The notes under the pieces are model-generated. The model was not told the DNA's origin and searched no databases. It saw only the letters and a program-made list of their open reading frames with translations. Position numbers and translations under genes: made by a program. DNA of 64,000 nt from Hemiscyllium ocellatum (lineage: Eukaryota): NCBI RefSeq assembly GCF_020745735.1, contig NC_083409.1:11711052-11775051 (forward strand). The letters run 5' to 3'. How positions within the stretch are numbered: position 1 is the stretch's first letter; each line of letters starts with the position of its first letter. This document shows, piece after piece, positions 1-61,478 of this stretch.

Positions 1-238
1 TCCTTCCCTGTTAGGCCTCTTGCATTTGTTCCCGCCTGCCCTGACTCTTTGACTTGCCTTTGTTCTCAACTATACCAATCTCAGATTGAAATATTTCCTC
101 ACTATCTCCCTGGGTCCCTCCCACCCATCTTACTAGTTTAAATCCTCCCAAGCAGCTCTAGCAAACTCCCTGCCAGTATATTAATCCCCTTCCAATTTAG
201 GTGCAATCCGTCCTTCTTGTACAGGTCACTTCTACCTC

Positions 239-3109: not shown

Positions 3110-3122
3110 NNNNNNNNNNNNN
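3110..3122. other. Assembly gap (13 N)
   Basis: Run of 13 N. Confidence 0.99.
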
Positions 3123-6489: not shown

Positions 6490-7590
6490 TGTTTCCAGCA
6501 TTGGGCACAGAACTGGCTGAGTAGGAGGAGACAGAGGGCAGTGATGGGGGGATGGTTTTCAGAATGGAGGGCTGTGACTCGTGGTGTTCCACAGGGAACT
6601 CTGCTGTATATGGTCTACATAAATGATTTGGAGGAAAGCGTAGCTGGTCTAATTAGTAAGTTTACAATTGATACAAAGATTGGTAGAAGTGCAGAGAATG
6701 AGAAGGATTATCTAGGATATGGCAGGATAGAGATGCTTGGACAGAAAAATGGCAGGTGTAGTTTAATCCAGACAAATGTGAGGTGATGCATTTTGGAAGG
6801 TGATGTACAGGTGGGAATTATACAGTGAATGACAGAATCCTTTGGAGTATTGATATGCAGAGGGATCTGGGTGTGTATGTCCACAGATCACTGAAGGTGC
6901 CAGCACAGGGAGGTAAGGCAGTAAAAAAGGCTGATGGCCTGGTTGCCTTCATTGGAAGGGGCATTGAGTGTAAGGATAGACAAGTTATGCTGCAGCTTTA
7001 TAGAACTTTAGTTCGGCCACACTTGGAATAGTGCACACAGTTCTGGTCGCATAGAACTGCACACAGTCCAAAAAGAAGGATGTGGATGTTTTGAAGACGG
7101 TGCAGAAAATGTTTACCAGGATATTGTCTGGTATGGGGGGATTGTAGTTCTGAAGAAAGGTTGGAGAGACTGAGTTTGTTTTCACTGAAATGCAGGAAAA
7201 TGAGGTGCGTCCTGATAGAAGTTTACAGAGTTGTGAATGGGATAGGCAGAGTGGAAATTATGAGACTTTTTCCCAGGGTGGAGGGGGTCAAATACTAGGG
7301 GACGCATGTTCAAGGTGCAGGGGTTTGGGGGAATTCATTGTAAAGAGGTGTACAAACCAAGTATTTCACACAGAGGAAGTTGACTACCTGGAACACACAG
7401 CCAGAGGAGGGGGTGAAAGCAGACACAATAGAAGTATTCAAGAAATTCCTGCACTAATGCATGAATAGGAAGGGAATAGAGGGATATGAATCCTGTCGAT
7501 GAAGATAGTTTCAGTATAGAAGGGCAAAATGTATCAGCACAGGCTTGGAGGGCCGAAGGGCCTGTTCCTGTGCTGTATTGTCCCTTGTTC
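6490..7590 (+). mobile_element. Decayed CR1 RT and 3' end (inside the left palindrome arm)
   Basis: RQRAVMGGWFSEWRAVTRGVPQG and LVRPHLE motifs; mirrored at about 9770-10770 on -. Confidence 0.85.
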
Positions 7591-8170
7591 TTTGGTCCCT
7601 GCTGTTGAATTGGATTCTCGGGAGCCAGCTCCATATGAAGAGCCTGTTCTCATTCTTTTGTTGGAGTTCATGGGGCAGCTGCTGCTTCCTTGTTACGTCA
7701 CTGATCAAACCAACAATGGGGAAAGCCTCTTGATATTTTAAATACACTGTCTGCAGGAAAATGTTTGGCTGAGGTTTTAATATTGTTTAATAAGATAATG
7801 ACATCAATACATCAGTGTTCTTTACGGCTGGGAGCATTTAACATCATAGTCCTTGTTTCAAGTGGACTCTCACTCATGATAATACAGTTTTCAATGTTTC
7901 TCTCCCTTTATGTGTTACGAAGAGATTTGCCAACATGTTTTGGTGAGGACAGTGCATCTTCATTGGAGGATTGGAAGATGATATCTTCAGGACACACACA
8001 CTAAACAACCCCACCATCCTGTGGCCGACCATTTCAACTCCCCATCCACTTGCTAAGGATATGCAAGTCCCTAGGCCTACTCCACCGCCAAATTGAAGCC
8101 ATCTAACAACTGGAGGAAGAACACCACATCTTCCACCTTGAGACCCTCCAATGACACGGAATGAATGTTA

Positions 8171-21098: not shown

Positions 21099-21427
21099 CT
21101 ACACACATTCTGATCTCCTGATGCTCTTGCTGAGGGGAGAGGGGAGGGTCACGTGAGTGAGGGCACAGGAGAAGCGAGCGTTGGACTCCCAGTCAGACTC
21201 AGAGAGGGTCAGCAGGCTGCTGACACTGTAGGTGCTGTCCGAAGCTCGCAGGTAGTTGCTGGTCTGAACCCCGTCCGAAATGACTGCACCGTCCTTCTTC
21301 CACTGCACCTCTAGCTCATCGGGATAGAAGTGATTGGCAAGGCACACCAGGGTGGCAGTGCCCTTGGCATTGACCTGCTCCGGGGAGGGGGGCAGCAGGG
21401 TCAGCTTGGGCTGAGAGTTGTCACGGA
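21099..21427 (-). CDS. IGKC: Ig kappa-type constant exon (C1-set), intact
   Basis: Acceptor TCTTGTCTTTCAG|TC. Reads RDNSQPKLTLLPPSPEQVNAKGTATLVCLANHFYPDELEVQWKKDG...FSCALTHVTLPSPLSKSIRRSECV*, with both domain Cys and the penultimate interchain Cys; phase matches the J donor. Confidence 0.97.
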
Positions 21428-22249
21428 CTGAAAGACAAGAGAAACAATTTTAATCCCTGCCTTTTGAAGGTACATAAACTCTCTGAACAGTAACTGGTAA
21501 AACATTTGAACGTTTGTATCCAGTACCTAGCAGACCTGACAAAGCACTGGCATTTTAAACATTGCTTTTTGGGACGTGTACGGCACTGGCAGAGCCAGTC
21601 GCTGCCCATCCCTAACTGTCTCTGAGAAGGTGATGGTGATGCAGCAGAATGATAAGGGACAGTCCTGGACCACCATTTAAGGAATGAATGTGGGCAGCTG
21701 GAAGGGCTATCAATGTGGGAGCATTTTAGTGACAGTGATCGGACCTCAGTGAGATTGAGATTAGGGATGGAAATGGAGAACCGTGGAGCAAGTGTAAAAG
21801 TTTTCATTTGGGAACAATCCATTTTACCAAACTGTGTGGTAATTTGATAAAAGAGTACTGGAACCATCGACTTGATGGGAGATCAGTGACAGGGCAGTGG
21901 GAGGCCTCCAAGGATGAGACAGAGACAAAGACCATTCAGAATCTTTTCCCAAAAGAGTAAGAGTGGCACTCCCAAAGACAGAGTCTTAGCAAAGATGTGA
22001 AACTATCGATATGATGTGGAGGCTCTGGTGTCCAACTGGGGTGGACATGTTCAGGAGTCACATGACACCAGGTTACAGTCCAACAGGTTTATTTAAAATC
22101 ACGAGCTTGTGAAACGCTGCTCCATCTTCAGGTGAAGCGACTTCAGTGCTGAAGGAACAAAGCTCTGAAAGCTTGTGATTTGAAATAAGCCTGTTGGACT
22201 ATATTCTGGTGTCATGTGACTTCTGACTTCAAATGAAGCCCCGTTAGAG

Positions 22250-22800
22250 TACAATGAGAGAACTGTGTGCAGTTCTGGTCACCACATTGCAGGAAGGATG
22301 TGATTCCCCTAGAGATGGGGACAGTGGAGGGTTTTATCAGGAATGAGGAGTATTAGCTTTGAGGAATGATTGGATTGGCTGGGACTGGTTTCTTTGGAAC
22401 ACAGGAGGCTGAGGGGAGATTTGATCGATGGTGTGTAAAATGATGAGGGGTCTGGATAGAGTGGGTAGGAAGAACTGATTTCCATCAGCACAGAGGGCAA
22501 TAACCATGGGGAGAGATTGAAATGAATTGGGGGCAGGGTTCGAGTGGAGTTGAGGAGTAATTGTTTTCACCCAGTGGCTGGTGGGATCAGGACCTCACTG
22601 TCTGAAAGGGTGACAGCGGCAGAAACTCTCATCACATTGAAAAAACACTTGGATATTCACGTGAAACACCAAAGCCTCCAGAGCTATGGAGCAAGAGCTG
22701 GTATGTGGGGTGGAGTTCGACACCTCTTTAACAAACCTCCGATCACTCACAGCTCGGGAGAACTTTATCCAACAACATTGGAGCAGAGTTGGATCAGCAC
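22250..22800 (+). mobile_element. Old CR1 3' fragment in the J-C intron
   Basis: GTGCAGTTCTGGTCACC...AGGCTGAGGGGAGATTTGAT motifs. Confidence 0.75.
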
Positions 22801-23809
22801 ACTTCAGGAAGGAGTCACGTTGGGTGTCCATGTAGAAGGTTCTAGATTTTGTTTCAAACCTTCCAGCTCAGCGCTGGGTTAAGGTCAAATGTGAGGGTGC
22901 AAAGAGTCTCAGTGTCCTGGGATCAGACAGTGACACTGCTCTAAATGATCCCATGTTCCCTGGAAGATGGAAGCGTGCATCCAACGGGCAAGGGTCATGT
23001 TCAGGAGACTCCAACCTCAAAGAAAGACTTGCATTTATGTTGCACCTGCCTCCACCTAAGGATGTTGCAGTGGCTCTTTCCATCAGACTGTGCTCAGCAA
23101 GATCCCAGAGAGCTGGGTGACAATGTGGCGAGGATCAGATTTTTAGTGATGCTAATTAGGGAATCAGTATTGACCAGGACACCAGGAGACACCATCCTGC
23201 TGTTTGTCTAGTAGAGCCATGGATTGGCATCTCTGATATCTGAAAGGCTCCCAGTGCATCAAAAGAGAGACTTGTATGTCAGGCTCTCCCAAAGCATTTA
23301 CAGAGAGTGAGGGACTTGTCTGGACACTGGTCACTGTTGTAATGCAGAAAACACAATTTGCACATAGCAATATCGCACAAAAATAAATGAGATTATGAAG
23401 CATGTTCAGTGATGTTTCGGGGATAAATATTGACCTGAAGTCAACCCAAAGAGAAAGCAAATGGGTTCAGTTGCACAAAACGTGAGAAAATGAAAGGCAC
23501 AGGAGAAGGTGGGAGTCGTGGTTAGTGATGGGTTTGATTGTTACCAGAAAATAAAAGGAAGGATCAGAATTTGTGAATGTCATATTGTAACAAGGCAATA
23601 CAGACAGTAGAAATAACCTAAAGTCTTTGGATGATAAATCATTCGGAATAAGGTAGACAGAGTGATGCCACAAATTGAGGTTCCCAAGTACTTTAAAATC
23701 ATTAAAGTGACGCAGGGCTCAGGAGAGGTTAGTAAAGTTCCCAAAATAATTAATAGGACATAGATTATGGAAAGGGTCAGAAAATTAATTTTAGGCACAG
23801 TGCATAAGG

Positions 23810-24990
23810 GGACAACTATGAAAAGGAGGACAGTCAGTGCAGGACTGAGGGTGTTGTACCTGAATGCAGGGAGTATCCGAAATGAGGTAAATATGTTTGT
23901 CGCAGATTGGAATTGGCAGGTACGATGTTTTGAGTATCACAGAGACCTGGCTGTAAGGGGTTGAGGGCTGGGAATGAAATACTCAAGGATGCACATCCGA
24001 TTGACAGGACATGCTGATGGGCAGATGGGGGTGGGGTTACCTTCTTGGTAAGAAATGAAATGAGATCAATCACAAGAAGGGATTTAGAGTTGGAATGCAT
24101 TCAATCTGTGTGGGTAGAGGTGAGGAGTTGCAAGGGAGAAAGAGCATGATGAGAACTTAGCACAGGACCCCCCAGCAGCAGTCAGGATATGAGGAAGAAA
24201 ATAAATCAGGAGATAGAGAAGGCCCCGCTATAATAGTCATGAGGGACTTCAATATGCAGGGAGACTGGAAAATTAAATTGTTTGGGGATGTCAAGGGTAG
24301 GAATTAAAGGAATGTTTACGACATGGTTTTTAGAGCAGCTTGTGGTAGAGATCACTATGGAACAGGCAATTCTGGATTGGGTGATGTGTATTGAAGCAGA
24401 CCTGATTAGGGAACTTAGGGTGAAGGAATTCCTTGGGGGCATTGACCGTAATATGACAGAATTCACCCTGCAGTTTGTGACAGGGAATCTGGAGTCAGTT
24501 GTACCGGTAATGCAATTAACTTAAGGTAACTACAAAGACATGAGGGAGGAGCTGGCCAGAGTTGGTAAGAAAGGAAGCTGAGCATAAGAGAGAATGGAGC
24601 AGCAATGGTAGGAGTTTCTGGGGGGTAATTTGGGAGGCAGAGCAGGAATTTAACCCAAGGAAGAAGAAAGGTACTGAGTGGAGGCCAAGGCAACCATGGC
24701 TGATGAGGGAAGTCAGGGTCAGCATAAAAGCAAAAGAAAAAACATGCAATGTGGTGAAGATTATTGGGAAGCCGGAGGATTGGGAAGCCTTTAAAAAACA
24801 GCAGAGAGTAACTAAAAAAAAGTAAGGGTGGGTGTGTAAATAAAATATGAGGGTCAACGAGTTAGTAACATAAAAGAATATTGCAAGAGGTTTTCTTTAG
24901 ATATATGAAAGGCAAGAGGGAGTCAATAATAGAAATTGTACCACTGGAAAAGGCAGAAGTAGTAATGGGGAACAAAGAAATGGTGGAAAA
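23810..24990 (+). mobile_element. CR1 ORF2 endonuclease fragment
   Basis: LRVLYLNAGSIRN, EQAILDWVMC and QPWLMREV motifs. Confidence 0.85.
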
Positions 24991-25639
24991 AGTGCATCAG
25001 TGCCTTAAATCAGCTTTAACAGTGGTGTGATAATGCTGCTCATTTCACAAGTTTGAGTTGTCCTTGGATTTTTTTTCAAGAGGGGTTGTAAAGGCAGAGG
25101 TTCCAATTTGTCTGGGTTAGGGACTTTGCTCATGGCTAACAGATACTGCCTAAGGCAACAGTCAGGGAAAAGGCTTTTAGGTTTTATATTAAACACTTGT
25201 CCAATAAAAGGAAAATGGCCAGTTCTTCCAGTTTGCTGTTTTTGACAAACAGTCGGTTGGAAGCTCCTGGATAAAGAAAGCTGCTGGTGAGAAAGGTTCC
25301 CCAATTCAACATTTTCCAGTGGACTCACTGTCTGAAATTCCTCTCCTGTAAGAACCCCTGTGTTTATATTTACCTTCTTGCCAAGGCTATTACAGCAAAT
25401 TGGAACAGCTCTTTGTCAAGTTACATTTTTTCGTCAGTTGGGTTTTCAAATAGTTAAGTTATTCTAAATTCTGTTTTCTTTTGATTGTAAATAAATACTC
25501 TTTTCCTTCAAGCTGAGTGGTTTGGCCAGTTGTATCAATCCTGGAATATCCAGGTTACATTTGCTGAACACAATTCGAAAAGGTAAGGTCTGGGCTGCAT
25601 TCTTAAAATGTTTTGAAGGGTCTGGCCTGGTCCATAACA

Positions 25640-27090
25640 ATGTCACAGAGTCCTACAGCATGGAGACAGGCCATTTGGACCAAACTGGTCCATGCCAACC
25701 AAAATGTCCATTTACGCTAATCCTGCACTTGGCCCATATCCTTCTGAATCCTTTCCTTTGCTGTATTTGTCCAAATGCCTTTTAAATGTTATTAATGTAC
25801 CCACCTCAACCACTTCCACTGGCAGCTCATTCCATATGCGAACAATCCTATGTGTAAAAAGGTTGCCCCTCAGGTTCCCTTTTATTCTTTCCCCTCTAAC
25901 CTTAAACTGATGCGCTCTAGCTCATATTCGCAAACCTTGGGGAAAAGACAGAGTGAATTCACCCTATCCATGCCTCTCATGATCTTATGAGGTCCTCCCT
26001 CAGTCTCCTACACTCTAAAGAAAAAAGTACTCTCCCTTTAACCCAAACGATTGAATCCTGGCAACATGCTTGCAAATTTCTTCTGCACTCTTTCCAGTTT
26101 AATAACATCCTTCCTGGAACAAGGTGACCAAAACTGAACACAATATTCCAAGTGTGGCTTCACCAGTGTCCTGCATAACTGCAACATAACTTCCCAACAT
26201 CTGTAGTCAATGCCCTGACTGATGAAGGGCACTGCAGAAAAAGCTCTCTTCTCTGCTCTATTTACTGTGACTCCATTTTCAGAGAACTGCTTATCTGAAT
26301 TCTAAGGACCCTCTGTTCCATTATATTCCTTAAGGTCCTATCATTCACCATGAAACTCCTACCTTGCTTTAAATTTCCAAAATACAAGACCTCACATTTG
26401 TCTGTATTAAACTCTATTTGTCATTTCTCGGCCCACTTCCCCAGCTGAGCAAGGTCCTGCTGCAATTTCTGATAACTGTCCGCACTGTCCACAATGCTGC
26501 TTATTTGAGTGTCATCAGCAAACTCACTAACCATGCCTTGTACATTCTCATCCAAAACATTGTTATAGATAACAAACAGCAATGGGCTCAGCACTGACCA
26601 CTGAGGCACTCCACTAGTCACAGGCCTCCAGTACAATAAGGATTCTTCCCCTATTACCCTGTGCTTTCTACCATCAAGCCAATCGTGTATCCAATTTGCC
26701 AGGTCACCTTGGATTCCATGCGATCTAACCTTCCATAACAGCCTACCATGTGGAACCTTATCAAAGGCCTCACTGAAATCCATATAGACCACGTCTACCA
26801 TCCTGCCCTCATCAACCTTCCTGGTAAATTCATCAAAGTACCTTAACAAATTTGTGAGGCATATTCTCCCACTCACAAAGTCATGCTGACAACTCCTAAT
26901 CAAATTCACTCTTTCCAAATGCATGTGTACCTTATCTTATCAAACAACTTACCCACCACAAATGTTAAGCTTATAATTCCCAGGCATTTGTTTCTCAGCC
27001 CTTTTTGAACAATGGCACAATCTTCGCTATCCTCCAGTCTTCTGGCACCTCACCTGTGGCTAACCATGATGCTTAATTATCAGCCAGTAC
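25640..27090 (-). mobile_element. CR1 RT and 3' end
   Basis: ORF 26421-26924 with DVVYMDFSEAFDKVPHGRL...FADDTQI. Confidence 0.9.
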
Positions 27091-27099
27091 ACCTGACCT

Positions 27100-28740
27100 T
27101 CAAGAGAGTTGGGAGCAGAAGTGAGTGGAAAGGGCATCACTAAGGTGGAGGGGTTGAGGCAGCTGAAAGGTCTGAAGGTGGATAAATCATTCAGACCCGA
27201 TGGACTACACTCCAGAGTTCTGATGGAGATAGCTAAGGTAATTGTAGGGCCATTGGCTGTGATCTTTCAGAAATCACTGGAGTCAGGAGTGGTCCCAGAA
27301 GACTGGAAAATAGTGAATGTAACATCCCTGTTTAAGAAAGGAGGGAGGCAGAGATGGGACATTATAAGCTGGTTAGCCTGACCTCGGTCATTGGTAAGAT
27401 TTTAGAGGTCTATCTAAGGGTGAGATTGCAGGTATTTGGAATCTCACCCTTAAGTCTGGTAAAATTGCAGCCTGGCAAAATTGGGCTGAGTCAGCACAGC
27501 TTCATCAAAGGGAGACATGCCTGATAAATCTGTTAGAAATCTTTGAGGAGGTAACAAGTGAGTTAGACAAAGGAGAGCCAGTGGATGTGATCCATTTGGA
27601 TTTCCATCAGGCCTTTGACAGGGTACAATAAAGGAGACTGCTAAGTCAAATCAGAGCCCATGCTGTCAGGAGCAAGGCACTGCGAATTGTAGAGGATTGG
27701 CTGGCCGGCACAAAGGCGAGAGTAGGGACAAAGGGATTTTTTTCTGGATGGCTGGTGGTGCTTTGTGGTGATCCTCAGGGATCTGTGTTGGGACCACAAC
27801 TATTCACATTATCCATTAACAATCTGGATAAGGAACTGAAGATATTGTTCATATGTTTGTAGATGACACAAAAATTGGTGAAAGGACAGGTGGAGTTGAG
27901 GAAGTGGGGGAGATTGCAGAAGGACTTGGTCAGGCTGGGAGAATGTACAAAGAAGTGGCAGGTGGAGTACAATGCGGGGACTTGTGAGGCTAGATACTTT
28001 GGTGGGAAGAATAGAGACACAGAATGTTTTCTAAGTGAGGAAAGATTTCAGAAATCTGAAGCACAAAGAGAATTGGGAGTCCTTGCTCAGGTTTCTCTGA
28101 AGGTTAACGTGCAGGTTCACCATTGGCTGTTTGAAAGGCAGTTACAATGTTAGCATTAACTTTAACGTCAGAGGTGTACTGCTGAGTTTGTATAAGTCTG
28201 TAATCAGACCACATTTGGAATTTTGGTCTCCTTATTAAGGAAGGATGTGCTGTCATTGGAGAGGGTCCAGAGGAAAAAGAGAGAAAGAATAAGAATACTC
28301 CTGGGAATGAAGGGGTGTCATATAAAGAGTGGTTGAGGATTCTGGATCTGTATAACAATTGTGTTTAGAAAGATGACGGAGGAATCTTATTGAAACTACA
28401 GAATATTGAGAGGCCTGGAGAACATGGAGAAGGTGTTTCCACGAATAGAAGAAACTTGGGCCCGAAGGCAAAGCCTCAGAGTGAAGAATGATCCGTCAGA
28501 ACTGAGGTAAGGAGGCATTTCTTCAGCCACAGGGTGGTGAATCTGCGGAACTCATTGTCACAGAGGTCTATGGATGCCAAGATGTTGAGAGTATTTAAAA
28601 CAGAGACAGATCGGTTCTTGATCAGTAAGGAGATCAAAAGTTAAAAGGAGAATGGGGTTGAGAAACACATCACACAAGATCAAATGGCAGAGCAGACGCT
28701 CTTCTGACTGGCCCAATTCTGCTCCTATATCTTAAGTATT
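27100..28740 (+). mobile_element. CR1 RT and 3' end
   Basis: PDGLHSRVLME...PEDWKIVNVTSLFKKG and further RT motifs, degraded. Confidence 0.88.
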
Positions 28741-28784
28741 TTGGGTTTATGTAGAGGTTCCTTGAATCCCTGGAAAACTGGAAG

Positions 28785-29120
28785 TACGGTCACTTAGTGG
28801 TTAGCCCTGCTGCCTCACAGCGCTATGGACCCAGGTTTGATTGTAGCCTCGGGCGTCTGTCTGTGTGGAGTTTGCATGTTCTCCCTGTGCCTGTGTGGGT
28901 TTCCTCCGGGTGCTCTGGCTTCCTCCCACAGTCCAAAGCTGTGCAGGTTCGGTGAATTGGCCATGCTAAATTGCCCATAGTGCAGGTTAGGTACATTAGT
29001 CAGGAGTAAATGTAGGTTAAAAAGGTAGGGGAATGGGTCTGGGTGGGTTACTGTTCGGAGGGTCAGCGTGGACTTGTTGGACCAAATGGCCTGTTTCCAT
29101 ACTGTAGGAATTCTATGATT
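28785..29120 (+). mobile_element. HE1-type SINE
   Basis: Same body as 13346-13651. Confidence 0.88.
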
Positions 29121-29249
29121 GTATGGACATTGAAAGTACTGGATTGTGGGCCCTGCTGTTGCTGTTTCTCAAAAGTACTTTGACAAAAGATAATCAGGGA
29201 GTGGTGAGAGTGAGCATCAGGTTGCATGAGGGAATTGCTTGTCCTGCTT

Positions 29250-30890
29250 CCTGGAATACCATGAGTACAGGAAGTGTGGTCAGTGACAGCAGTTGCAACT
29301 CTGGGTTTCGGAGCTTCAGCAGCAGCTGGTGTCAGTGAGGAACGTCCGTGAGGCTGAGAGCTCCGTAGAGAGCACGTTTCTAGATGTGGTCACTCTGCAG
29401 TTTCAGAGTATGCAGGGAGAGAGGGAATGGGGAGCAGCAGACAGTCCAAAAGGACCAGGCAGCTAGTACAGGAATCCCATGAGTGCATCCCACTCTCCAA
29501 CCAGGATTCAGTTTGGAATCCTGATCAGAATGATGGTTCATCTGGGCAGTGCAGCCAGAGCCAAGTCCCTGCCACCATGGGGGGCTCAGCTGTACACGGG
29601 GGGCACAAGGAAGACTGGAAGAGCAATAGTGAGAGGAGATTCGAGAGTGAGGGCATCAATAGGTGTTTCTGCAGCTGCAGATGGGAATCCAGGATGGTGT
29701 GTTGTCTCCCTGGTGCCAGGGTGAAGGATGTCACTGAGCGACTGCAGAGCACCCTGAGGGGAGAGGGGGAACAGGCAGCAGTCGTGGTCCACATCGGTCC
29801 CAGTGACAGTGGGAGAAAAGGGATGTGGTCCTCCAGTCAGAATTTAGGGAGTTCCAGAGGGAATTAGCAGCAGGAGCTCAAAAGTAGGAATCTCCAAGAT
29901 TACCCCCAGTGCCCCACACAACTGAGAATAGAAAGAGGAGGATAGCACAGGTGACGGTGGAACTGAAAAGACAGTCCAGGAGGAAGGGCTTTCGATTATT
30001 TTAACATTGGGACTGGCTTTGGGGGGAGATGGACATGTACAGACCAGACGGGTTGCTCCTGAACAGACCTGGGACTGAGTTCCTTTGGGGTGATTTACTC
30101 GTGCTGTTGGAGAGGGTTTAAACTATCTTGGCCTGTGGGATCCAGGAGCTAATACCAGAGAGGAACACAGAGGTGCACAGAATCCTGGGAGAGATAGATA
30201 GCACCAGAATAATGAATAGAACTTCTTACCCAGTTTCAGAGTGAGGGAGAGAGAGTAATAAATTCTAAATCAGGGTCACTGTGTAAGGATGGGACTGCAC
30301 GGAGTGTTGGGAATAAGACTGGGAAGGTACAGCCACAGAGTGTTAAGTGGAAATCTGATGTGTGTCTCTCACATAGGAAGATAAGATAATAAGAACATTA
30401 GAAATAGGAGCAGGAGTGGGCTATCTGACCCATCGAGGATGAGGAACGTGAGTTATGAAGATAGACTGAAGACGTTGGGACTGTTTTCCTCAGAGAAGAG
30501 AAGGCAGAGAGGAGATTTGATCGAGAAATTCAAAATCAGGAGGGGTCTGAACAGAGTAAACCAGGAGAAAATGTTCCCACCTGAGAAAGAATTGAGAGGG
30601 AGAGGCCATGGATTGAAAATAATTGGTAAAAGAGGCGAAAGTGAGATGGGGGAAAAACATTTTCAGCCAGTGGGTGGTTAAGGTGTGGAATGCACTGCCT
30701 GAGAGTGTGGTGGAGGCAGCTTCAATTGAAACATTCTGAAGGGAATGAGACTGTTATTCAAAAAGGAACAATGTGCAGGGTGACAGGGAGAAGGCAGGAG
30801 AATGACACTCAGTGAATTGCTCATTCAGAGAGCCGGTCCAGACAGGATGAGTTGAATGGCCTCCTTGTGCACTGAAACGATTCTGTGATT
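29250..30890 (+). mobile_element. CR1 ORF1 (zinc-finger/coiled-coil plus SGNH esterase) with a 3'-end fragment
   Basis: RMVCCLPGARVKDV...VVVHIGPSD (ORF 29427-29867), then EKRRQRGDLIE (30439-30681). Confidence 0.82.
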
Positions 30891-30943
30891 GTGTGATTGA
30901 GCAGAGTTAAAGCTGGGGGAGGTGGGAGCTCGGTGTCTCACTG

Positions 30944-30978
<35 letters not shown>
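30944..30978 (+). repeat. (CTG)11-12 trinucleotide repeat in the J-C intron
   Basis: Direct reading. Confidence 0.97.
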
Positions 30979-31339
30979 AGGTCAGTGAGATCAGAGACTG
31001 GGACAGGGAGCCAGAGCTCACATCAAACTCTGCCCCGTGTCCGTCACACTGAGACTGGCAGGAGGCTACTCACTGATTTCACTCCATGCTGCAGGAATGG
31101 GACCACAGGCTGCAAATGGACAGAGCTCCTCCGCACGGTGAGTAAAACTGACTGACTTATATCTTGCTGCTTAAGCAGGGCAATAGGACGACAGAAATAC
31201 AGCTGTACACCCTGTTAGATACAGTGCTCCTCAATCATTCACTGCAGCTCCCCACTAACACCTGCATCAATTCAGCATTTGTGATTTAGGAAGTTTCAGT
31301 ATTGAAAGGGTTAATAACGGAGGATTGAGGTTTACTTAC

Positions 31340-31374
31340 TCAGTCTGAGCTTGGTTCCTTTACCGAACGTAAGC
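31340..31374 (-). CDS. IGKJ: Ig light chain J segment, LTFGKGTKLRL
   Basis: FGxG motif, abuts the 23-RSS heptamer, phase-1 donor A|GTAAGT. Confidence 0.97.
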
Positions 31375-31413
31375 CACAGTGAGAGCTCCCAGTGTAGAAG
31401 CTGTACAAAAACC
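31375..31413 (+). other. J recombination signal sequence, 23-bp spacer
   Basis: CACAGTG-AGAGCTCCCAGTGTAGAAGCTGT-ACAAAAACC read on +, facing the V RSS, so joining is deletional. Confidence 0.97.
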
Positions 31414-31821
31414 TCAGCTCTCTGCTTCCCTCTGTCACTCTCACCCTCTCCCTATTTCCCAGTCTGTCGGTCACTCTCACCCTCTTTTTGCCCCTATCAG
31501 TCTCTCCCTCATTCATGTGTCTTTCTGTCTCTGCCTCTGGGTTGTGAACTTTATTTTTTGTTGTTAAATCTTGCAGCTGTTCTTCACATGTGGCCATGCA
31601 GTGGAAGGGGGAAACCTGAGGCCTTCAGTGAGCGTTGAGACACCACAGAGACTGGAGTGTGTCGTGGACAGTGACAATCCCAGCATGGGGTAATTTGTTC
31701 AGTTTCATTTAGATCTAACTGTGGGATATGACAGTTCAGGCGGTGGGACTGTGTGTCCATTATTATGCATTTTATATAACCGTGGATGTGTCAGTACAGG
31801 AGGTGATTCTGTGTGCTTTGA

Positions 31822-31849
31822 GGTTTTTGTACAGCTCTGTATCACTGTG
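31822..31849 (-). other. V recombination signal sequence, 12-bp spacer
   Basis: CACAGTG-ATACAGAGCTGT-ACAAAAACC with perfect heptamer and nonamer. V12/J23 is the kappa configuration. Confidence 0.97.
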
Positions 31850-32148
31850 TAGAGGGTAGCTGCTATACTGCATACAGTAATAGTCAGCGACATCCTCATT
31901 CTGAACGTTGCTGATTTTCAGGGTGAAACTGGTCCCTGATCCACTGCCGGTGAATCGATCCGAGACTCCTGTGAATTGATTTGTTGCAGCATAGATCAGG
32001 AGAGAGGGTTTCTGACCTTCTTGCTGCTGGTACCAGGAAAGCTCATTGCTAACAGATTGACTGGCCGTACAGGTGATGGTTGCAGTCTGGCCCCGTCCCA
32101 CTGACAGCACCGGGGGAGACTGAGTCATGATGATGTCCCCACTGATAC
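31850..32148 (-). CDS. IGKV: Ig kappa-type V exon (shark NS4/type III-like), intact and unrearranged
   Basis: Acceptor CCCTCAG|GT. Translates (G)[26 protein letters not shown]...WYQQ...[33 protein letters not shown] with both Cys and the Trp conserved, no stops, and is directly followed by an RSS. Confidence 0.97.
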
Positions 32149-32334
32149 CTGAGGGATCAGAGAGAAACACAGTGAAGTCAGAACTGTCACACAAAGAGCC
32201 GGTCAAATGAGAGATTGTTGGAGACACTGAGCATTCCTCTGATTTCAGCATTTTCCCTTCAATCACAAGTCAGTGGAATTGGAGTCAAATGGAGAGCAGC
32301 TAAAGATTCAAGGTGGAAGGAGAGAGATTTGTAC

Positions 32335-32383
32335 CTGCGACACAGAATGCCAGGGGCCAGATTAACTGGATGCGTGAAATCAT
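32335..32383 (-). CDS. IGKV: Ig kappa-type light chain leader exon, MISRIQLIWPLAFCVA(G)
   Basis: ATG at 32383, hydrophobic signal peptide, phase-1 donor GCAG|GTACAA; 186-bp intron to the V exon. Confidence 0.95.
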
Positions 32384-32440
32384 GGTGTGTGCTCTTGTCC
32401 CTGTGCCTGGTTTCTGATAAACTCTCCCTTCATTGGGCTC

Positions 32441-32505
32441 TGCTTTATAAAGCTGCAGCCTGTGAGAGTCTGACTGGGTGTTCCTCAGTATGTAAATGGC
32501 ATCTG
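32441..32505 (-). promoter_or_regulatory. V promoter: TATA-like TTTATAAA, variant octamer ATTTACAT (32490-32497), E-box CAGATG (32500-32505)
   Basis: Order and spacing upstream of the leader ATG match Ig light-chain promoter architecture. The octamer has one mismatch to ATTTGCAT. Confidence 0.65.
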
Positions 32506-32569
32506 GCAGAGAGAGCCACGTCAGCCCCTCACACTTCCTCTTCTCACTCTCTCTTTGTCTCAGAGAGTG

Positions 32570-33850: not shown

Positions 33851-34319
33851 TCCCAGGTGGTGACAGTTGAATTCAGGATAAATCTCTCTCTGCTCTGCCC
33901 GACAAATGGATGTTAACCCTTTACCCCAGAAGCATGTCTTCTCCTGGAGTAAAGGCCCATTTCCACATTGACCAGGTTTTGGTATCTCTCAGGAAGATGG
34001 ACAGATTCTTGTTAAATGAAGGGCAGTTCTGTGCTGTTGGTCTATTCTCACTGGGGACTGGTTTGGACACAAACCTCATTCCATGAAGGCCCAGCAGAGA
34101 GAGGAGATCCTCAGGCCATCAGTGTGAGCTGGAGGGACAGAACAGGCTCTGACCCACTGACCCATCCTGTCCATTCACAACATGTTCCAATCCCTTCCCC
34201 TCTCCTTCCCCTTCCATGGTCAGTCTCTGAGTCAGTTGGACCATCACACATGTACAACAGAAAGGAACTGAACCCCACACCCACCATGGTGTCCACGATG
34301 CACTGGACTCTCCAACAGA

Positions 34320-36429: not shown

Positions 36430-37300
36430 GGTGTGTTCTCTGAGTTGGTTCAAGAGTGTTTTGCTTGAGAAAACACTTCTGTGAACTGGTTTGTCTGTTT
36501 CTTCCAGTCTTTGTGTAAAGGTGAGACTAAGTGTGTAAATGCTGTCATTTCATGGAGCAATCCAGTCAGTCCCACCCCCTCCCCTACTCGACCCCCAGAG
36601 CCTTGCAGGTTTATTTCCATCAAGAGCCCATCCAATCTGCCATTGCAATCACTGAGTGTCTTCACCTGCCTCACCTGAATGGGCACTAATTTCCAAGTCA
36701 TTACCAATTGCTGCTAAAAAAAGTTCTTCCTGGCATCCCATATCTCTTGCCCAACAAAATGCAAGGTAATCTCAATGTGAAGATGGGATTTTGTCTCCAC
36801 ACGGACTGTGCGGCGGTCACCCTTACTGATACTGTCATGGACAGATACACCAGCAGCAGGCAGGTTGGTGAGGGTGATAGTGAGTATGTTTTTCCCTCTT
36901 GTTGGTTCCCTCACCACCTGCCCCAGGTCCAGTCTAGCAGCTGAATCAGGTGGAACTTGACCAGCTTGCTCAGTAGTGATGCTTCTGAGCAGGTCTTGAT
37001 GGTGGACTTTGAAGTCCCTTACTCAGAGTATATCCTGCATCCTTCTCCCCCTCAGTGCTCCCTCCAAGTGTTGTTCAACATGGAGGAGGACTGACTGCTC
37101 AGTTGAGGTTGGAGTGGAGGGTGGTGCTATGTGGTTATCAGCAGGAGGTTTGCTTCCCCATGTTTGACCTGCTGTCATGAGGCTTCATGGATTCCATAGT
37201 TAATGGTGAGGACTCTCAGGGCAACTCCCTTCCAACTGTACACACCACTGTGTTGCCTCCCCTGCTTGGTCTATCTTGCCAGTTAGAAACTGAATGAGGG
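36430..37300 (-). mobile_element. Old LINE endonuclease fragment (CR1/L2 superfamily); related copy at about 62770-63800
   Basis: VREPTRGKNILTITLTN motif. The two copies are in the same orientation, consistent with independent insertions. Confidence 0.65.
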
Positions 37301-37450
37301 AACAATTCTGTGCAGGTTTCACAGCTTGGAGACAGAGCTGCTGCTGGATTCTGTTTCTCATCTCCGAGTGCAGCCATGTGTGTTTGTGAGAGAATGACAG
37401 ACACTTTTTCCATCGTTGTGCTGTTTCTGAAAAGAAAAATCCCAGAACCA

Positions 37451-37740
37451 GCCTCCTGTGCTGTCAGGTTCCAGGGAGTGCAGATGGTTCACAGTTTTCT
37501 CCCATCTCAGTAACAAACACCCAGCAGCTCCGAGCTCCTTCTTTCACTTCCTCTTTTGGTGAAGTTTCAACCTTGTGCTCTGACAGTCTTTGCAGTTATT
37601 TTTTACACTGGGGCTTTCTGCTGTGGTCAGAAACTCTAATAATAAGTGTCCAATCCGTGACAATCACAGCAGCTAAGAGTAGTCAGGACTGAGGAGCCAG
37701 GCTCACTGTGAAACATATTGGGAAGATCAAAGCCATTCCC
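37451..37740. promoter_or_regulatory. Candidate B-cell enhancer module, copy 1
   Basis: EICE AAAGAGGAAGTGAAA on - at 37542-37556, GGGGCTTTCT at 37610-37619 and TGTGGT just after; about 95% identical to the inverted copy at 61190-61478. Confidence 0.5.
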
Positions 37741-38399
37741 TTCAGCTCCTGGTATAAACTCCATCCCTCTCCCTGAGCACTATCTGCTGCTCAACCAGAC
37801 TCTTTACAAACTTGGCCTCATCTTTGAGGCTGATCTGAGCACCATATCCTCCATCCACAAAGATCAGCCACTGAAAATGTCTGTCATGTCCATGGGACTC
37901 CAAACATGACCATGCCAATGTTGTGCTTGCACACATCACAGCCACTGCCCTCCGTAACCTTCAGCTCATCCCAAATTCTGCTGCCCATATCCAAACTCGC
38001 ACCAAATCCCATTCCTCCAACCTCCTGCACCCTGTGCCTACATTGGCTCCTGGTCCAGCAACATCTCGATTTTCAAATTCTCATCCTTGTTCTCAAGTCC
38101 CTCCCTGTCCTCCACTCTCCCTATCTCTGTAACCTCCTCCAAACTGCCTCACTCAGTGTGATCAACAATCTTGGATATATGGCTGTCTATTCCTTCATCC
38201 AAGTCATTTAGAAATATCGTGAAATGCTGAGGTTCTAGCCCAATTCCCTGGGGACACCACTATCCACATTTTGCTCATTGGAGAGCGCACACATTATCCC
38301 TCCTCTCTGTCTCCTCCCTCCAAACTAATTTCTGACCAAAGATAAATATTTTTCCCTAACTGGCGAGAATGGGAGAAAGCAGAGGGACATAGTGGAAGG

Positions 38400-39400
38400 A
38401 TACTTGTCAGATTGGAGGCCTGAGTCTAGTGGAGTTCCTCAGGATTGATGCTGGGCCCATTACTGTTTGTCATCAATATCAATAATTTAGAAAACATGAG
38501 AATAGCCGGTATTGTGGACAATGAGGAAGGTTATCAGATATTGTAGCAGGACCTTGATCAGCTGTGGAGGTGGGAAAAGAAATGATAAATTGAGTTTAAT
38601 GTAGATAAGTATGAGGTCTTGCATTTTGGAAAGTTAAATCAATGTAGGAGTTTCATGGTGAATGGTAAGGCCTTAAGGACTGTAGTGGAACAGTGGGATC
38701 TCGGAGTTCAGGTGCACAGTTCTCTGAAAGTTGAGTCACAGTTAGACAGGGCAGTGAAGAAGGCTTTTGGCATACTGGCCGTCATCAGTCAGGGCACTGG
38801 GTGTAGAAGTTGGGAAGTTATGTTTCAATTGTACATGACATTGGTGAGGCTGCACTTGGAGTATTGTGTTCAGTTTTGGTCACCTTGTTTTAGGAAGGAT
38901 ATTATTAAACTGGAAAGAGTGCAGAATAAATTTACAAGGATGTTGCCAGGTTTCAACATCTGAGTTTTTGGGAGAGTTTGGACAAGCTAGGACATTTTTC
39001 TTAAGAGTGTCGGAGACAAAAGGGGAATCTTTTAGAAGTGTATAAGATCTTGAGAGACATGGATAGGGTGAATGCACTCAGTCTTTGTCCCAGGGCTGGG
39101 GAATCAAGGACTAGAGGGCATCAGTTGAAGGTTAGAATAAACGGGAACCTGAGGGGCAACATTTTTACACAGAGGGTGGTAGTCGTATGGAATGAGCTGC
39201 CAGCTGAAGTGATTGAGGCGGGTACATTAACAACATTTAAAAGGCATTTGGACAAATACATAGATAGTATGCAATTTGAAGGATATGGACCAAATGGAGG
39301 GAAATGGGGTTAGTGTGGATGGATATTTTGGTCAGCACGGTCCAGTTTGGGCCAAAGGGCCTGTATCTGTGCTGTAGGACTCGATGACTCTATGACTCTA
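38400..39400 (+). mobile_element. CR1 RT 3' fragment
   Basis: ORFs 38619-38963 and 39038-39313. Confidence 0.88.
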
Positions 39401-40729
39401 CAATTCCATATGTTTCTATGTTTATGAACAGTCTCTCAAACATAGAAACAGAGGAACTAGGAGCAGGAGGAGGCCATTCAGCCCTTCGAGTCAGCTCTGT
39501 CAGTCAATATGACCATGACTGATCATCCAACTTAGTCTCCTGTTCCCATTTTTTCTCCATAACCTTAATCCCTTTAGTCCTAAGATCTATACCTGTCGCT
39601 TTCTTGAAAACATTTAATGTTTTGAGCTCAACTGCTTTCTGTGACAGAATATTCCACTAGCTTCCCACTCTCTGGCTAAAGAACTGTTCCTCATCTCAGT
39701 CCAAAATGGCCTTTCCATTTTCTTTAAACTGTAATTCCTGGTTCTGGACTCTCAAGTCATCATGAACATAATTCCTGTATTTTCTGGTCTTGTTCTGTTA
39801 GGATTTTACAGGTTTCAATGTGATTCCTCTCAAATTTCTAAACTCCAGTGAATATAATCCTAACTGATCCAGTTTCTCATCAGATCTAAGTGCTGTCCTT
39901 CCAGGAATCAGTCTGGTAAACCTTCGCTGCCCTCCCTCCACAACCAGAACATCCTTCCTCAGGTAAGGAGACCAAAACTGCACACAACAGAAACATAAAA
40001 TCACACAGTACAGAAGAGGCCCTTCAGCCCATTAACTGTGTACTAGCCAAACTACAGTAAACCTATACCAGTCCCACTTTCCAACATCAGACCCATAGCT
40101 TGAATGTTCTGATATTTCAACTGCTCACCCAACTACTTTTTAAAGTTTGTGAGGTTTCCCACGTCAACTACCCTCCCAGGATGTGCGTTCCAGACCCCCA
40201 CCACCCTCTGGGTAAAAAACACTTTCCTCAAAACATCTGGAAACCTCCTATCTTTGACATTGAATGTGAGCCAACTTGTTCTTGACCTTCCCAAGAAGGA
40301 GAACAGCTGCTTTCTCTCCTCCCTGTCCATTCCCCTCATAACCTTATACACCTCTACCAGGTCCCCCCTCCACCTTCTCTGCTCTGAAGAAAACAACCCG
40401 AGCTGATCCAATTTCTCTTCATCACTGAGATGTTCCATCCCACACAACATCCTGGTGATTCCCCTCTGCACCCCATCCAGTGCAATCACATCCTTCCTAC
40501 AGTGTGGTGACCTGAACTGCACACAGTACTCCAGCTGTGGTCTCACCAATGTTCTGCTTAACAGCAACATCTCCTCCTGCTGTTATAACCAATACCTGAC
40601 ATGACAAAGGCAAGTGTCCCCTGTGCCTTCATAACTGCTCTGTTAACCTGTCTTGCCATTTTCAGGGATCAGTGGAGAAGCACCCAAGATCACTCTGTTC
40701 CTTTGTGCTTCCTCAGTTCAAAGACCAAA

Positions 40730-47505: not shown

Positions 47506-48422
47506 CTGATACTGGCAAAATTAGCCTTCCTCCAATTTAGAACTTCAACTTCTGGATCTGGTCTATCCTTTTCCATCACTATTTTAAAATGAATAGAATT
47601 ATGCTCGCTGAGCAAAAGTGCTCCTCCACTTGCACCTCAGTCACCTGCCCTGCATTATTTCCCAAGAGAAGGTCGAGTTCTGCACCTTCTCTAGTAGGTA
47701 CATCCACATACTGAATCAGAAAATTGTCTTGTACACACTTAACAAATTCCTCTCCATCTAAATCCTTAACACTATGGCAGTCCCAGTCTATGTTTGGAAA
47801 GTTAAAATCCCCTACTATAACCACCCCATTATTCTTACTGATAACTGAAATCTCCTTAAAAATTTATTTCTCAATTTCCCGCTGACTACTGGAGGGGGGC
47901 TATAGTATAATCCCAAGAAGGTGATTATCCCCTTCTTTTTTCTCAGTTCCACCCAAATAATTTCCCTGGATGTATTTCTGGGAATATCCTCCCTAAGTAC
48001 AGCTGTAATGTTATCCCTTATCAAAAATGCCACTCCCCCTCCTCTCTGGCCTCCCTTTCTGTCCTTCCTATAGCATTTGTATCCTAGAACATGAAACAGC
48101 CAGTCCTGTCCATCCCTGAGCCATGTTTCTGTAATTGCCATGCTATCCCAGTCCCACGTTCCTAACCATGCCCTATGTTCATCTTCCTTCCCTGTTAGGC
48201 CTCTTGCATTTGTTCCCGCCTGCCCTGACTCTTTGACTTGCCTTTGTTCTCAACTATACCAATCTCAGATTGAAATATTTCCTCACTATCTCCCTGGGTC
48301 CCTCCCACCCATCTTACTAGTTTAAATCCTCCCAAGCAGCTCTAGCAAACTCCCTGCCAGTATATTAATCCCCTTCCAATTTAGGTGCAATCCGTCCTTC
48401 TTGTACAGGTCACTTCTACCTC

Positions 48423-49078
48423 AAATTTGCCACCCAGGTAAATAGTGCTGTGAGGAAGGCATATGGTGTACTGGGCTTTATTGGTAGAGGAATTGAGTTC
48501 CGGAGTCCTGAGGTCATGTTGCAGTTGTGTAAGACTCTGGTGTGGCCTCATCTGGAGTATTGTGTGCAGTTTTGGTCGCCATACTATAGGAAGGATGTGG
48601 AGGCATTGGAACGAGTGCAGAGGAGGTTTACCAGGATGTTGCCTGGCATGGTAGGAAGATCATATGAGGAAAGGCTGAGGCACTTGGGCCTGTTCTCATT
48701 GGAGAAAAGAAGGTTTAGGGGAGATTTGATAGAGGTGTATAAGATGATTAGGGGTTTAGATAGGGTAGACACTGAGAACCTTTTACCGCTAATGGAGTCA
48801 GCTGTTACTAGGGGACACAGCTTTAAATTAAGGGGTGGTAGGTATAGGACAGATGTTAGGGGTAGATTCTTTACGCAGCGGGTTGTGAGTTCATGGAATG
48901 CCCTGCCAGTAGCAGTGGTGAACTCTCCCTCTTTATGGTCATTTAAGCGGGCATTGGATAGGCATATGGAAGTTATTGGGCTAGTGTAGGTTAGGTAGGA
49001 TTTGGTCGGCGCAACATCGAGGGCCGAAGGGCCTGTACTGCGCTGTATTTTTCTATGTTCTATGTTCTATGTTCTATT
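48423..49078 (+). mobile_element. Young CR1 3' end with (TTCTATG)n tail, nested in ORF1
   Basis: Uninterrupted 179-aa RT C-terminal ORF at 48450-48989. Confidence 0.92.
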
Positions 49079-51369
49079 TAAAACAGCTTCCAAAGATTCA
49101 AAAATGTGAATCCTTCTCCCATACACCAGCTCCTTAGCCATGCATTCATCTGCTCTATCCTACTATTCCTGCCCTCACTAGCTCATAGCACTGGGGGTAA
49201 TTTAGATATTACTACTCTCGAGGATCTCCTTTTTAACTTCCTGCCTAACTCTCTGCAATCTACCTTCAGAATCTCAACCTTTTCCCTTCCTATGTCGTTG
49301 GTTCCAAAGTGTACAATGACCTCCTGCTGGTCCCTCTCCACCTTAAGAACATTTTGCACCCTCCCTGAGACATCCTTGATCCTGGCACCAGGGAAGCAAC
49401 ACAACATTCTGGCTTTTCACTGCTGGCCACAGAAACATCTGTCTGTACCTCGGGCTAGAGAGTCCCCTAATACAGTCGATCATTTGGAACCCGACATACG
49501 TCCCATTACATTAGAGCCAGTGTCAATACCAGGAACTTGGCTGCTCATGCTAAGTACCCCTGAGTTTCCATGACTCCCTACATTTTCCAAAGCAGCATAC
49601 TTGTTTGAAATGGGAATAGCCACAGAAGACACCTGCACCTCTCTGGCCTTTCCTGAAGTTATGGTAAGAGCCCATGGGATCCAAGGCATTTTGGCAAATT
49701 GGATCCAAATATGAGGCAAAGAGTAATGGTGGAGGGTTGTCTTTGTGATTGGAAGCCTGTGACCAGTGGTGTAAGACAGGGATTGGGGCTGGGACCCTTG
49801 CTGTTTGTAATGTACATTAACAAATTGACTGTGATTGTATAATTCAAAAGTTTTCAGAGGCCACATAAATTGGTGGTGTTATTGATATTGATTTGATTTT
49901 TATTTTAGTGTATTGTCACGTGTACTCGAGTGCAAAAGTATTGGAGTACAGTGAAAAGTATGTAACGTCACCTCACAAGGTGCCATCTTAGGTACAAGGA
50001 CCTCAGTAAAGAATCGTAAGAACAAGGTAGAAAGAAAGAATAAAGTTCAAAGTTACACGTTGCAGATCTTTTTAGTTTTAAGTAGAAAATGAAGAAATAA
50101 AGCTGAAAGTTCAAGCATTAAAGCCTTTCTTTAGAACTTAGCAACCATGGGATCATACTTTAAGTAATCATCTCGAGACCAGAAGTCCGGGCTGAGGCCT
50201 TCCCTGGTGGAGAGACCACCATTACAGAAAGGACCACTATGTGGGCTGAGAGACACCCACTCTGGGCCACTCAGAGATCGCCACACTAGGCCGAGTGACC
50301 ATCACGCTGGGCTGACAGTCTAGCATGCTGGGCTGACAGGCCACCATATTGAACTGAGAGGCCATCATGTTGGACCAAGAGTCTGTCTCGTTGGGCTGGA
50401 AGATCTCCCTGCCAGGCCAGGACACTGCCACACCAAGCCAGGAGGCCACATCATTAGGTCTGCACTAGGTCAGAGGCCTGGTGACTGAGGCTGGGAGTCC
50501 GTGCCCAGGAGAAGAAATAAGGGAGAAGGACAAAAGAAAAACACAAAAGAAAAGGAAAAGAGAAGTGGAATAGAAAGAAGAAAAGGAAACAGACGAAGCA
50601 GATGAACTCGGGCTGAAGCATCCTACTCTGCTGCCATCTTGGATGACTGGGTCTCAGGCTAGAGTCTGATATTGGTCAGCTGGTAACTTGGGCAGAGCAA
50701 TGGCAGATGTAATTTAATCCTGATACCTCTGAGGTGATCTAACTTGGGAGGTCTAATAAGGGTAGGATATTCACAATGAAAGGCATGTGCCTTGAGTGTC
50801 CTCATGCATGAATCACAGAGGGTTGGTCTACAGGTACAATAAATAATTAGGAAGGCAAATGGAATTTTGTCCTTCATTGCTAAAGGGATTGAGTTTAAAA
50901 AGCGGGAATGTTATGTTGCAGCTGTACAGGGTGTTGGTGAGGCCACACCTGGAGTACTGCGTGCAGTAATAGTCTCCTTACTTGAAAAAGGCAATATTGG
51001 CACTAGAGAGGTGCAGAGTTCACTAGGCTGATTCCGGGGTGGAGGGGGTTGGCTTATGAAGGGAGACTGCATCGACTGGGATATATTCATGGGAACTTAG
51101 AAGAATGAGGGGAACCTTATAGAAACAAATAAAATTATAAAGATAATAGATAAGACAGAAGTAGAGAGGATGTTCCCACTGGCAGGTGAAACTAAAACAG
51201 GAGGGTTTAGCCTCAGAATTAGGGGGAGCAAATTTCGGACTGAATTGAGAAGGAACATCTTCATCCAGAGGGTCATAAATCTATGAAATTCTTTGCTCAA
51301 TGAAGAAAGTGATGCTACTTCATTAAATGTTTTAAAACTAAGATAGATTTTTTTCACAACAAAGGAATT

Positions 51370-60095: not shown

Positions 60096-61478
60096 AGGAG
60101 GAGGCTGTTCAGCCCCTCGTGTCAGTGCTAGCTGTTTACGAGCCTCAATCACAATGAACATCTCCATTGAATGTCTGTTGTCAGGAAGTGATTGAGTCTG
60201 TTTTTAGAGACAGAATAACGGACAAATATGAACTGGTCCGAGAGAATCAGCATGGATTGACAAAGGTTCAGACATCTTTAACTAACCGGGTTACACTTTG
60301 TTCGGCGCTCACTAGTGTGGGATATAAGGGAATGTCGATGGCTATTGTCTATAGGGAATTCCAAAAGATATTTAAGAATGTTCCACAAAAGAAACATTGA
60401 TTCAGATCTTACACTCCACAACCATCTGATGAAGGAGCAGTGCTCCAAACGCTGATGCTTCCCAACAAACCTGTTGCATTAGAACCTGGTGTTCTGTGAT
60501 TTTTAACATTTACACGACAGTCCAACACCGGCATCTCCAAATCATGGAATTGGATGGAATTTGAGAAATGCATTTACCTTGGGTAGGAATGAGTCTGTCT
60601 AGGAGACAGAGAGGAAGGATAATGTGCGTGTGTTCCAATGAGCCAGATGTGAGTAGTGGTATTCCCAGGGATCTGTGCTGGGACCACAGCTTTTCACGAT
60701 ATTTCTCAGTGACTTGGATGAAGAAACAGAGAGCCATATATCCAAGATTATTGATCACACTGAGTGAGGCAGCTTGGAGGAGGTCACAGAGATAGGGAGG
60801 GTGGAAGAACAGGGAGCAGATTGAGAACAAGGATGGGAATTTGAAAATCGAGGTGTTGCTGGACCAGGAGCTGATGTCAGTCAGCTAGGATTGTGTCGGT
60901 TATGGTGGGGAGGCATGGACAGGAGTATGGGGTGGACTTGGTGTGAGTTTGAACACAGACAGCAGAGTTTGGAATGAGTTGATGTTTACGGAAGTCAGTG
61001 GCTGTGATGTGGGCCTGGATAACATTGGAATGGTCTCAAAAACATGGTTGAGATTTTCAGTGGCTGATAATTGTGATGTGGAGGATTTGGGCCTCAAATC
61101 AGCCCCAAAGATGAGGCCAAAGTTGTAAAGAGTCTGGTAGAGCAGCAGACAGTGCTCAGGGAGAGGGATGGAGTTTGTACCGGGAGCTGAAGAGGATGGC
61201 TTTGATCTTCCCAATATGTTTCCCAGTGAGCCTGGCTCCTCAGTCCTGACTGCTCTTAGCTGCTGTGATTGTCACTGATTGGACACTTATTATTAGAGAT
61301 TCTGACCACAGCAGAAAGCCCCAGTGTAAAAAATAACTGCAAAGACTGTCAGAGCACAAGGTTGAAACTTCACCAAGAGAGGAAGTGAAAGAAGGAGCTC
61401 GGAGCAGTTGGGTGTTTGTTACTGAGACGGGAGAAAACTGAACCGTCTGCACTCCCTGGAATCTGACAGCACAGGAGG
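60096..61478 (+). repeat. Right arm of an old inverted duplication of the cluster 5' flank
   Basis: Reverse-complement matches: 60096-60390/44760-45042 and 60548-61478/37451-38350, including shared repeat-repeat junctions. Confidence 0.88.
61190..61478. promoter_or_regulatory. Candidate B-cell enhancer module, copy 2 (inverted)
   Basis: AAGAGAGGAAGTGAAA at 61375-61390, AGAAAGCCCC at 61313-61322 and ACCACA retained. Confidence 0.5.

Follow-up and report, generated by a model that had tools for sequence, protein, structure and literature searches.

A conserved non-coding block upstream of shark kappa light-chain clusters is a candidate B-lineage enhancer

In the core of the mouse Ig-kappa 3' enhancer, a composite site for PU.1 and PIP/IRF4 is separated from an E2A site by a gap of about 15 bp, so that an Ets-IRF composite is followed on the same strand by an E-box at little over a helical turn. 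This enhancer lies 3' of C-kappa, is present once per locus and not once per cluster, and has no MEF2/RUNX pair. In cod, enhancers are associated with individual light-chain clusters. Like the catfish and zebrafish E-mu-3' enhancers, that of the cod light-chain cluster lies outside the J-C intron, 3' of C. The catfish enhancer core uses octamer and mu-E5 sites and not an Ets-IRF composite element (EICE) (PMC1800861). The Ig-lambda enhancers of chicken, human and mouse are defined by a set of E-box, NFkB, MEF2 and PU.1-IRF4 sites (PMC3972084), and chicken cIgLE, the human IgL enhancer and mouse E-lambda 2-4 and 3-1 have the same motif set. Shark antibody genes form many small autonomous V-J-C clusters, and the literature searched yielded neither a described regulatory element of a shark antibody cluster nor an Ig enhancer of cartilaginous fish.

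Here we describe a non-coding block of about 340 bases that is conserved a few kilobases upstream of shark kappa light-chain genes and occurs twice in the window, the whole 64-kb stretch of DNA analysed. Its sequence suggests, with a probability of roughly one half, that each kappa V-J-C cluster has in this block a cis-regulatory module of its own, most likely an enhancer of the B lineage, and it bears on how such clusters may be activated, chosen for rearrangement and targeted for hypermutation. In the block, as in the tetrapod Ig-lambda enhancers, PU.1-IRF4 composite, MEF2, kB-type and E-box sites are gathered in about 130 bp next to a light-chain gene. This likeness is one of motif set. There are differences as well: the tetrapod enhancers are found 3' of C and the shark block 2.4-6.4 kb 5' of V; kB-like and MEF2 sites follow each other in a different order; the shark kB-like site is non-canonical; and the copies in the window lack the E-box. 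The same-strand arrangement of composite and E-box resembles the mouse Ig-kappa 3' core, the gap being 14 bp wherever CAGCTG persists in the shark copies. The position outside the J-C intron is shared with the teleost enhancers, which unlike the shark block lie 3' of C.

The kappa cluster presumed to be the target of one copy (cluster A) and the two copies of the block are laid out in the window as follows.

21099-32383, minus strand: kappa cluster A, an intact-looking V-J-C cluster and the presumed target
21347-21099, minus strand: C exon of cluster A
About 31378-31340, minus strand: J of cluster A, with a 23-spacer RSS
About 32150-31850, minus strand: V exon of cluster A, with a 12-spacer RSS (heptamer, 12-bp spacer, nonamer)
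32383, minus strand: leader ATG of cluster A
32440-32560, minus strand: V promoter of cluster A, with TATAAA and the octamer variant ATTTACAT at 32497
37452-37467, plus strand: remnant of a LINE 3' tail adjoining the block, the first ~15 bp of the duplicated unit
37468-37806, reading toward V on the minus strand: block copy A, upstream of the minus-strand kappa cluster
37807-38360: faster-diverging, co-duplicated flank made of old retroelement pieces (copy B equivalent, 60560-61127)
61128-61462, inverted, V-proximal end toward the right-hand end of the window: block copy B, placed by alignment

The C exon of the window is identical to Hemiscyllium and Chiloscyllium chains at 80-81 of 82 residues, which places the window near or inside the Hemiscylliidae. 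From the leader ATG (32383) to the V-proximal end of copy A (37452) the distance is 5,069 bp, in agreement with the ~5 kb upstream of V given in the original prediction.

Copies A (37468-37806) and B (61128-61462, inverted) are 95.3% identical in a gapped alignment. They belong to a co-duplicated unit that is collinear between 37452-38360 and 61478-60560, and beyond this unit the two neighbourhoods share no homology except unrelated TE matches. Between 37451-37740 and 61190-61478, where about 14 differences had been reported, we count 13 mismatches and one 2-bp indel. The single mismatch reported for the central ~95 bp is also confirmed (37530-37624), a weak signal when taken alone because about 4.5 mismatches are expected at the block's own rate (P ~0.06) and the stretch was chosen post hoc. 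The neighbouring LINE-derived DNA is, as had been claimed, much more diverged, with 79.2% identity at 37807-38360 versus 95.3% at 37468-37806 (Fisher p = 4e-12), and identity between the copies drops abruptly past ~37806. CpG decay is not the cause of this difference, since G+C is equal in block and flank and the two hold 2 and 5 CpGs, respectively.

As comparison DNA, we used an older Chiloscyllium punctatum assembly and Stegostoma tigrinum, reached via kappa proteins that match the V of the window. Together with the window, these 114.5 kb of other shark loci make up a sample of ~178 kb that is biased toward Ig loci. Four further copies of the block lie in these loci.

L001 (C. punctatum), 3268-3615: block, 92% identical to the window, 6.4 kb upstream of its gene
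L002 proximal (C. punctatum), 4948-5296: block, 76% identical to the window, 4.7 kb upstream of its gene
L002 distal (C. punctatum), 991-1350, inverted: block, 74% identical to the window, its gene outside the locus
L004 (S. tigrinum), 7295-7634: block, 86% identical to copy A by BLAST and 88.6-91.6% to the window copies by alignment, 2.4 kb upstream of its gene

The comparison with other sharks bears out the predicted association, the block being found upstream of kappa V in C. punctatum (three copies) and in S. tigrinum (one copy). All six copies lie upstream of a kappa V or between head-to-head kappa clusters, and no further copy was found in the 64-kb window or in the 114.5 kb of other loci. 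Wherever the gene of a copy is known, the block is oriented the same way with respect to it. The expectation of a similar position at each cluster, on the other hand, does not hold, as the distance from block to V varies (2.4, 4.7, 5.07 and 6.4 kb). The C. punctatum copies are safely taken as independent cluster copies, though they may be paralogous and not orthologous across species; Stegostoma is the secure second species for the block. In L005, the closest relative of cluster A, there is no block in the 8.3 kb upstream, a stretch with gaps and with a breakpoint at the equivalent of 37341.

Copy A is 95.3% identical to copy B, 92.0% to L001 and 88.6% to L004, whereas its flanks reach 79-81% in the same comparisons; copy B is 95.5% identical to L001 and 91.6% to L004. 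Among copies A, B and L001, the ratio of block to flank divergence is 0.21-0.42 (Fisher p 4e-6 to 8e-13), that is, the block diverges 2-5-fold more slowly than its flank in all three pairs, with sharp edges. Because copy B has 95.5% identity with L001 and 95.3% with copy A, within-genome homogenisation does not explain the likeness of the window copies. At greater depth the constraint signal becomes weaker. In the Stegostoma comparison, the block has 88.6-91.6% identity and other alignable non-coding pieces (copy A versus Stegostoma) have 78-87%, and in L002 distal the block is kept no better than the flank beside it (ratio 0.8-0.87). Taken together, these findings indicate that the block is very probably a real, kappa-cluster-linked conserved non-coding element.

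The same data have to be weighed against the reading that the block is a functionless relic, old and partly TE-derived DNA that is carried along with cluster duplications and whose motifs are coincidental. Its apparent conservation would then come from local variation in mutation rate, from patchy gene conversion between clusters, or from survivorship of the pieces that can still be aligned. The location of the block between a LINE tail and LINE-derived DNA fits such an origin, as do the wide range of collinear non-coding identity between related clusters (79-93%, copy A cluster versus L005), the lack of the E-box in both window copies and the decay of the L002-distal copy to the level of its flank. 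We nevertheless regard it as unlikely that the block is a relic. The slowdown with sharp edges recurs in each of the three pairs, and gene conversion within one genome would not leave copy B equally similar to copy A and to the C. punctatum copy. In Stegostoma, about 2 kb that flank the block in the window (37807-39795, including the TE-derived flank) are absent and the block is kept, directly adjoining the homologue of window 39795-40145. Additionally, CpG content does not explain the difference between block and flank, and the core at 37468-37710 matches no TE, Pfam family or protein homologue and has no further copy in the window.

In the flank, the C-terminal 'LHWLP..FK' motif of a non-LTR ORF2-like protein is matched at E = 7e-8 by the plus-strand ORF at 37906-38208, and 38150-38360 on the minus strand is a reverse-transcriptase fragment. 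The last ~90 bp of the block (from ~37712) presumably continue the ORF2 of a very abundant shark LINE. The right-hand edge at ~37806 appears to be a real edge of the block, because a 229-bp insertion in L001 (L001:3034-3262) and the joint of the Stegostoma deletion (L004:7275-7295) both fall there. At the other end, several other copies of the adjacent LINE tail occur in the window, none of which then runs into the block; they stop within ~15 bp of the junction, which rules out that the block is part of this LINE.

Several other identities were considered and rejected. The ORFs at 37742-37945 (minus strand) and 37402-37689 (plus strand) match no Pfam family, the latter has no homologue among 5.8 billion proteins, and a look-up of the ORF in the 3' part of the block in the ESM Atlas gave only noise. 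The block is not coding, because the differences between copies alter residues and shift frames; gene models of related species begin at the V leader, and none has an exon upstream at the block. A reverse-transcriptase remnant suspected in the core ('VPQGS...YADD') is unsupported, as Pfam RVT_1 gave no match there, though the true reverse-transcriptase fragment of the window does match. A structured non-coding RNA is rejected as well: an Rfam search of the block found no match at E <= 1, and the covariation term is +2.37 kcal/mol, a penalty, so that no conserved structure is supported. A CTCF boundary is rejected because the block contains no CTCF core motif, with up to 2 mismatches allowed. 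A 29-mer from the core has no matches in metagenome contigs.

The V-proximal flanks of the block were also compared (window 37250-37451 versus 61479-61680; L002:760-990 and L002:5297-5500), and they are of two types. One has the full LINE 3' end (copy B, L002 proximal and L004 of Stegostoma), and the other has a LINE tail of ~15-22 bp followed by unrelated sequence (copy A and L002 distal). Both head-to-head pairs, that of the window and that of L002, have one flank of each type, so the pair looks like an old unit that was duplicated whole. The paired blocks are 23 kb apart in the window and 3.6 kb apart in L002.

Within the block, the following candidate factor sites were located by motif match.

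37542-37556, minus strand: EICE of copy A, AAAGAGGAAGTGAAA, with the core GGAAGTGAAA at 37542-37551
61376-61390, plus strand: EICE of copy B, AGAGAGGAAGTGAAA
37522-37527: former E-box of copy A, CAGCAG, where L001, L004 and both L002 copies have CAGCTG
61405-61410: former E-box of copy B, CAACTG (CAGTTG on the plus strand), a mutation that differs from that of copy A
37610-37619, plus strand: kB-like site GGGGCTTTCT, whose last base breaks GGGRNWYYCC (copy B equivalent, 61313-61322)
37622-37627, plus strand: RUNX core TGTGGT (copy B equivalent, 61305-61310)
37636-37645, plus strand: MEF2-consensus site CTAATAATAA (YTAWWWWTAR; copy B equivalent, 61287-61296)
37650-37657, plus strand: CCAAT box, in gene sense CGGATTGG in copy A and CTGATTGG in copy B (61275-61282), L001 and L004

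The EICE on the minus strand, the kB-like site and the RUNX core all lie where they had first been reported. The original prediction, however, described a conserved module of these three sites, of which the kB-like part needs qualification. The EICE pattern GGAANNGAAA is kept in five of six copies, with the core GGAAGTGAAA in both window copies, and the RUNX core is likewise kept in five of six. The kB-like site survives in five copies in a relaxed form and matches the canonical GGGRNWYYCC in none (0/6). The MEF2-consensus site, which the prediction had overlooked, matches fully in copies A, B and L001 and with one mismatch in the remaining three, and the CCAAT box is kept in four of six copies. 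Four copies, none of them in the window, have the CAGCTG E-box at 14 bp from the composite; its losses in copies A and B were independent, because the mutations differ (CAGCAG versus CAACTG). In the L002-distal copy, the EICE, RUNX and kB-like sites are all lost.

The window contains 11 matches to the EICE pattern, versus 3.9 expected. Only in the block copies is an EICE accompanied by sites of at least three partner classes inside 120 bp, with 0.005 such cases expected per shuffled window, a rarity whose significance is overstated because the motif classes were chosen after inspection. The 15-mer AAAGAGGAAGTGAAA is contained exactly in a published working PU.1 EMSA probe (PMC8105723), and GGAAGTGAAA is the core used for an IRF4-PU.1-DNA complex (bioRxiv 10.1101/2025.03.12.642038).

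One further match to the composite lies in the J-C intron of cluster A (29959-29968), where GGAACTGAAA stands 11 bp from a CACCTG E-box and resembles the core of the kappa 3' enhancer. The composite is not conserved in L003, L004 or L005, and we reject it as a second element and take it as a chance match. The intron match therefore serves as a control for the retention of the EICE in the block.

Some of the observations count against an enhancer. The E-box is destroyed in both window copies even though cluster A looks functional, constraint is uneven, with the L002-distal copy decayed like its flank, and the motifs were picked post hoc. Around the EICE, the partner sites are incompletely kept, with MEF2 perfect in 3/6 copies, CAGCTG in 4/6 (neither window copy) and a canonical kB site in 0/6.

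The block could instead be regulatory in another way, as the start (promoter or first exon) of an upstream transcript, sterile or long non-coding, that annotations lack, as mainly a DIVAC-type hypermutation element, or as a boundary between head-to-head clusters. An orientation to the gene that is constant wherever the gene is known would be unusual for a pure enhancer, and the CCAAT/Y-box, the A/T-rich stretch and the PU.1 site resemble TATA-less haematopoietic promoters. Two copies lie between head-to-head clusters both in the window and in L002, a placement that would suit a boundary. Additionally, the chicken and human lambda enhancers with the same motif set target hypermutation and have little effect on transcription (PMC3972084). 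We consider these roles improbable, to about the same degree as a relic: no gene model of a related species has an exon at the block, the block has no CTCF-like site, and it shows neither a conserved RNA structure nor an Rfam family. The weakest alternative, that the block is a dispersed TE or composite repeat with many Ig-unrelated copies and lies near the clusters by chance, gains some plausibility from a very TE-rich window and the TE-derived right half of the unit but is very unlikely, given that only six copies occur in ~178 kb of Ig-biased sample and all are kappa-linked, that the clusters share collinear flanks, as segmental duplication would give, that the adjacent LINE tail recurs several times without the block after it, and that the block ORF has no homologue among the 5.8 billion proteins and the core no match in metagenome contigs.

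Under the preferred reading of the block as a B-lineage enhancer, a PU.1/Spi-B-type Ets factor would recruit IRF4/8 at the composite site GAGGAAGTGAAAG, and RUNX/CBF, MEF2, NF-Y and a Rel-like factor would join at the neighbouring sites; in the copies that retain CAGCTG, an E-protein would occupy it as well, at 14 bp from the composite. The V-gene promoter with its octamer and TATA box would be the target of this complex at a range of 2.4-6.4 kb; the cluster would thereby become accessible to transcription and V-J joining, and might also be marked for somatic hypermutation. What the data show is the sequence, its linkage to and orientation toward kappa genes, its slower divergence and the retention of the sites; factor binding, enhancer activity, target gene and B-cell specificity are inferred. 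More tentatively, and with some doubt, the block may be an upstream enhancer of each mini-locus with a tetrapod-like grammar of PU.1/IRF, MEF2, kB-like, E-box and RUNX sites that doubles as a hypermutation-targeting element. If so, one block per cluster would drive both rearrangement and expression and the targeting of hypermutation, the grammar would predate the split of cartilaginous and bony vertebrates, and the block would be the first defined Ig enhancer in cartilaginous fish. An active block would mean that the light-chain enhancer logic of birds and mammals is very old, an age of about 450 million years for the shared logic, and would offer a way to study how sharks choose among clusters and exclude others. 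With its textbook PU.1/IRF site, the block is a concrete, mutable test object.

Additional features were observed in the non-coding DNA around cluster A and elsewhere in the window. A second conserved non-coding block, 33901-34260, lies 1.5-1.9 kb upstream of the V leader and is 93-94% identical to C. punctatum L001; L002, L003, L005 and L006 have an equivalent at the matching relative position, and none was found in Stegostoma L004. The V-proximal 800 bp beside copy A (36535-37341) are 93% identical to L005:8327-9134, while other collinear L005 segments are 79-88% identical, and an opposite-orientation copy at 63051-63554 is 70% identical. Either this stretch is under constraint too, or rates in the region are strongly heterogeneous. 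Window 1-3109 and 48185-51301 form a 3.1-kb direct repeat with 99.4% identity, which could be a recent duplication or an assembly artefact; its first copy ends at an N gap (3110-3122). The V promoter region of cluster A also has a CRE-like TGACGTGG and a second PU.1-like site, AGAGGAAGTG, ~150 bp upstream of the ATG.
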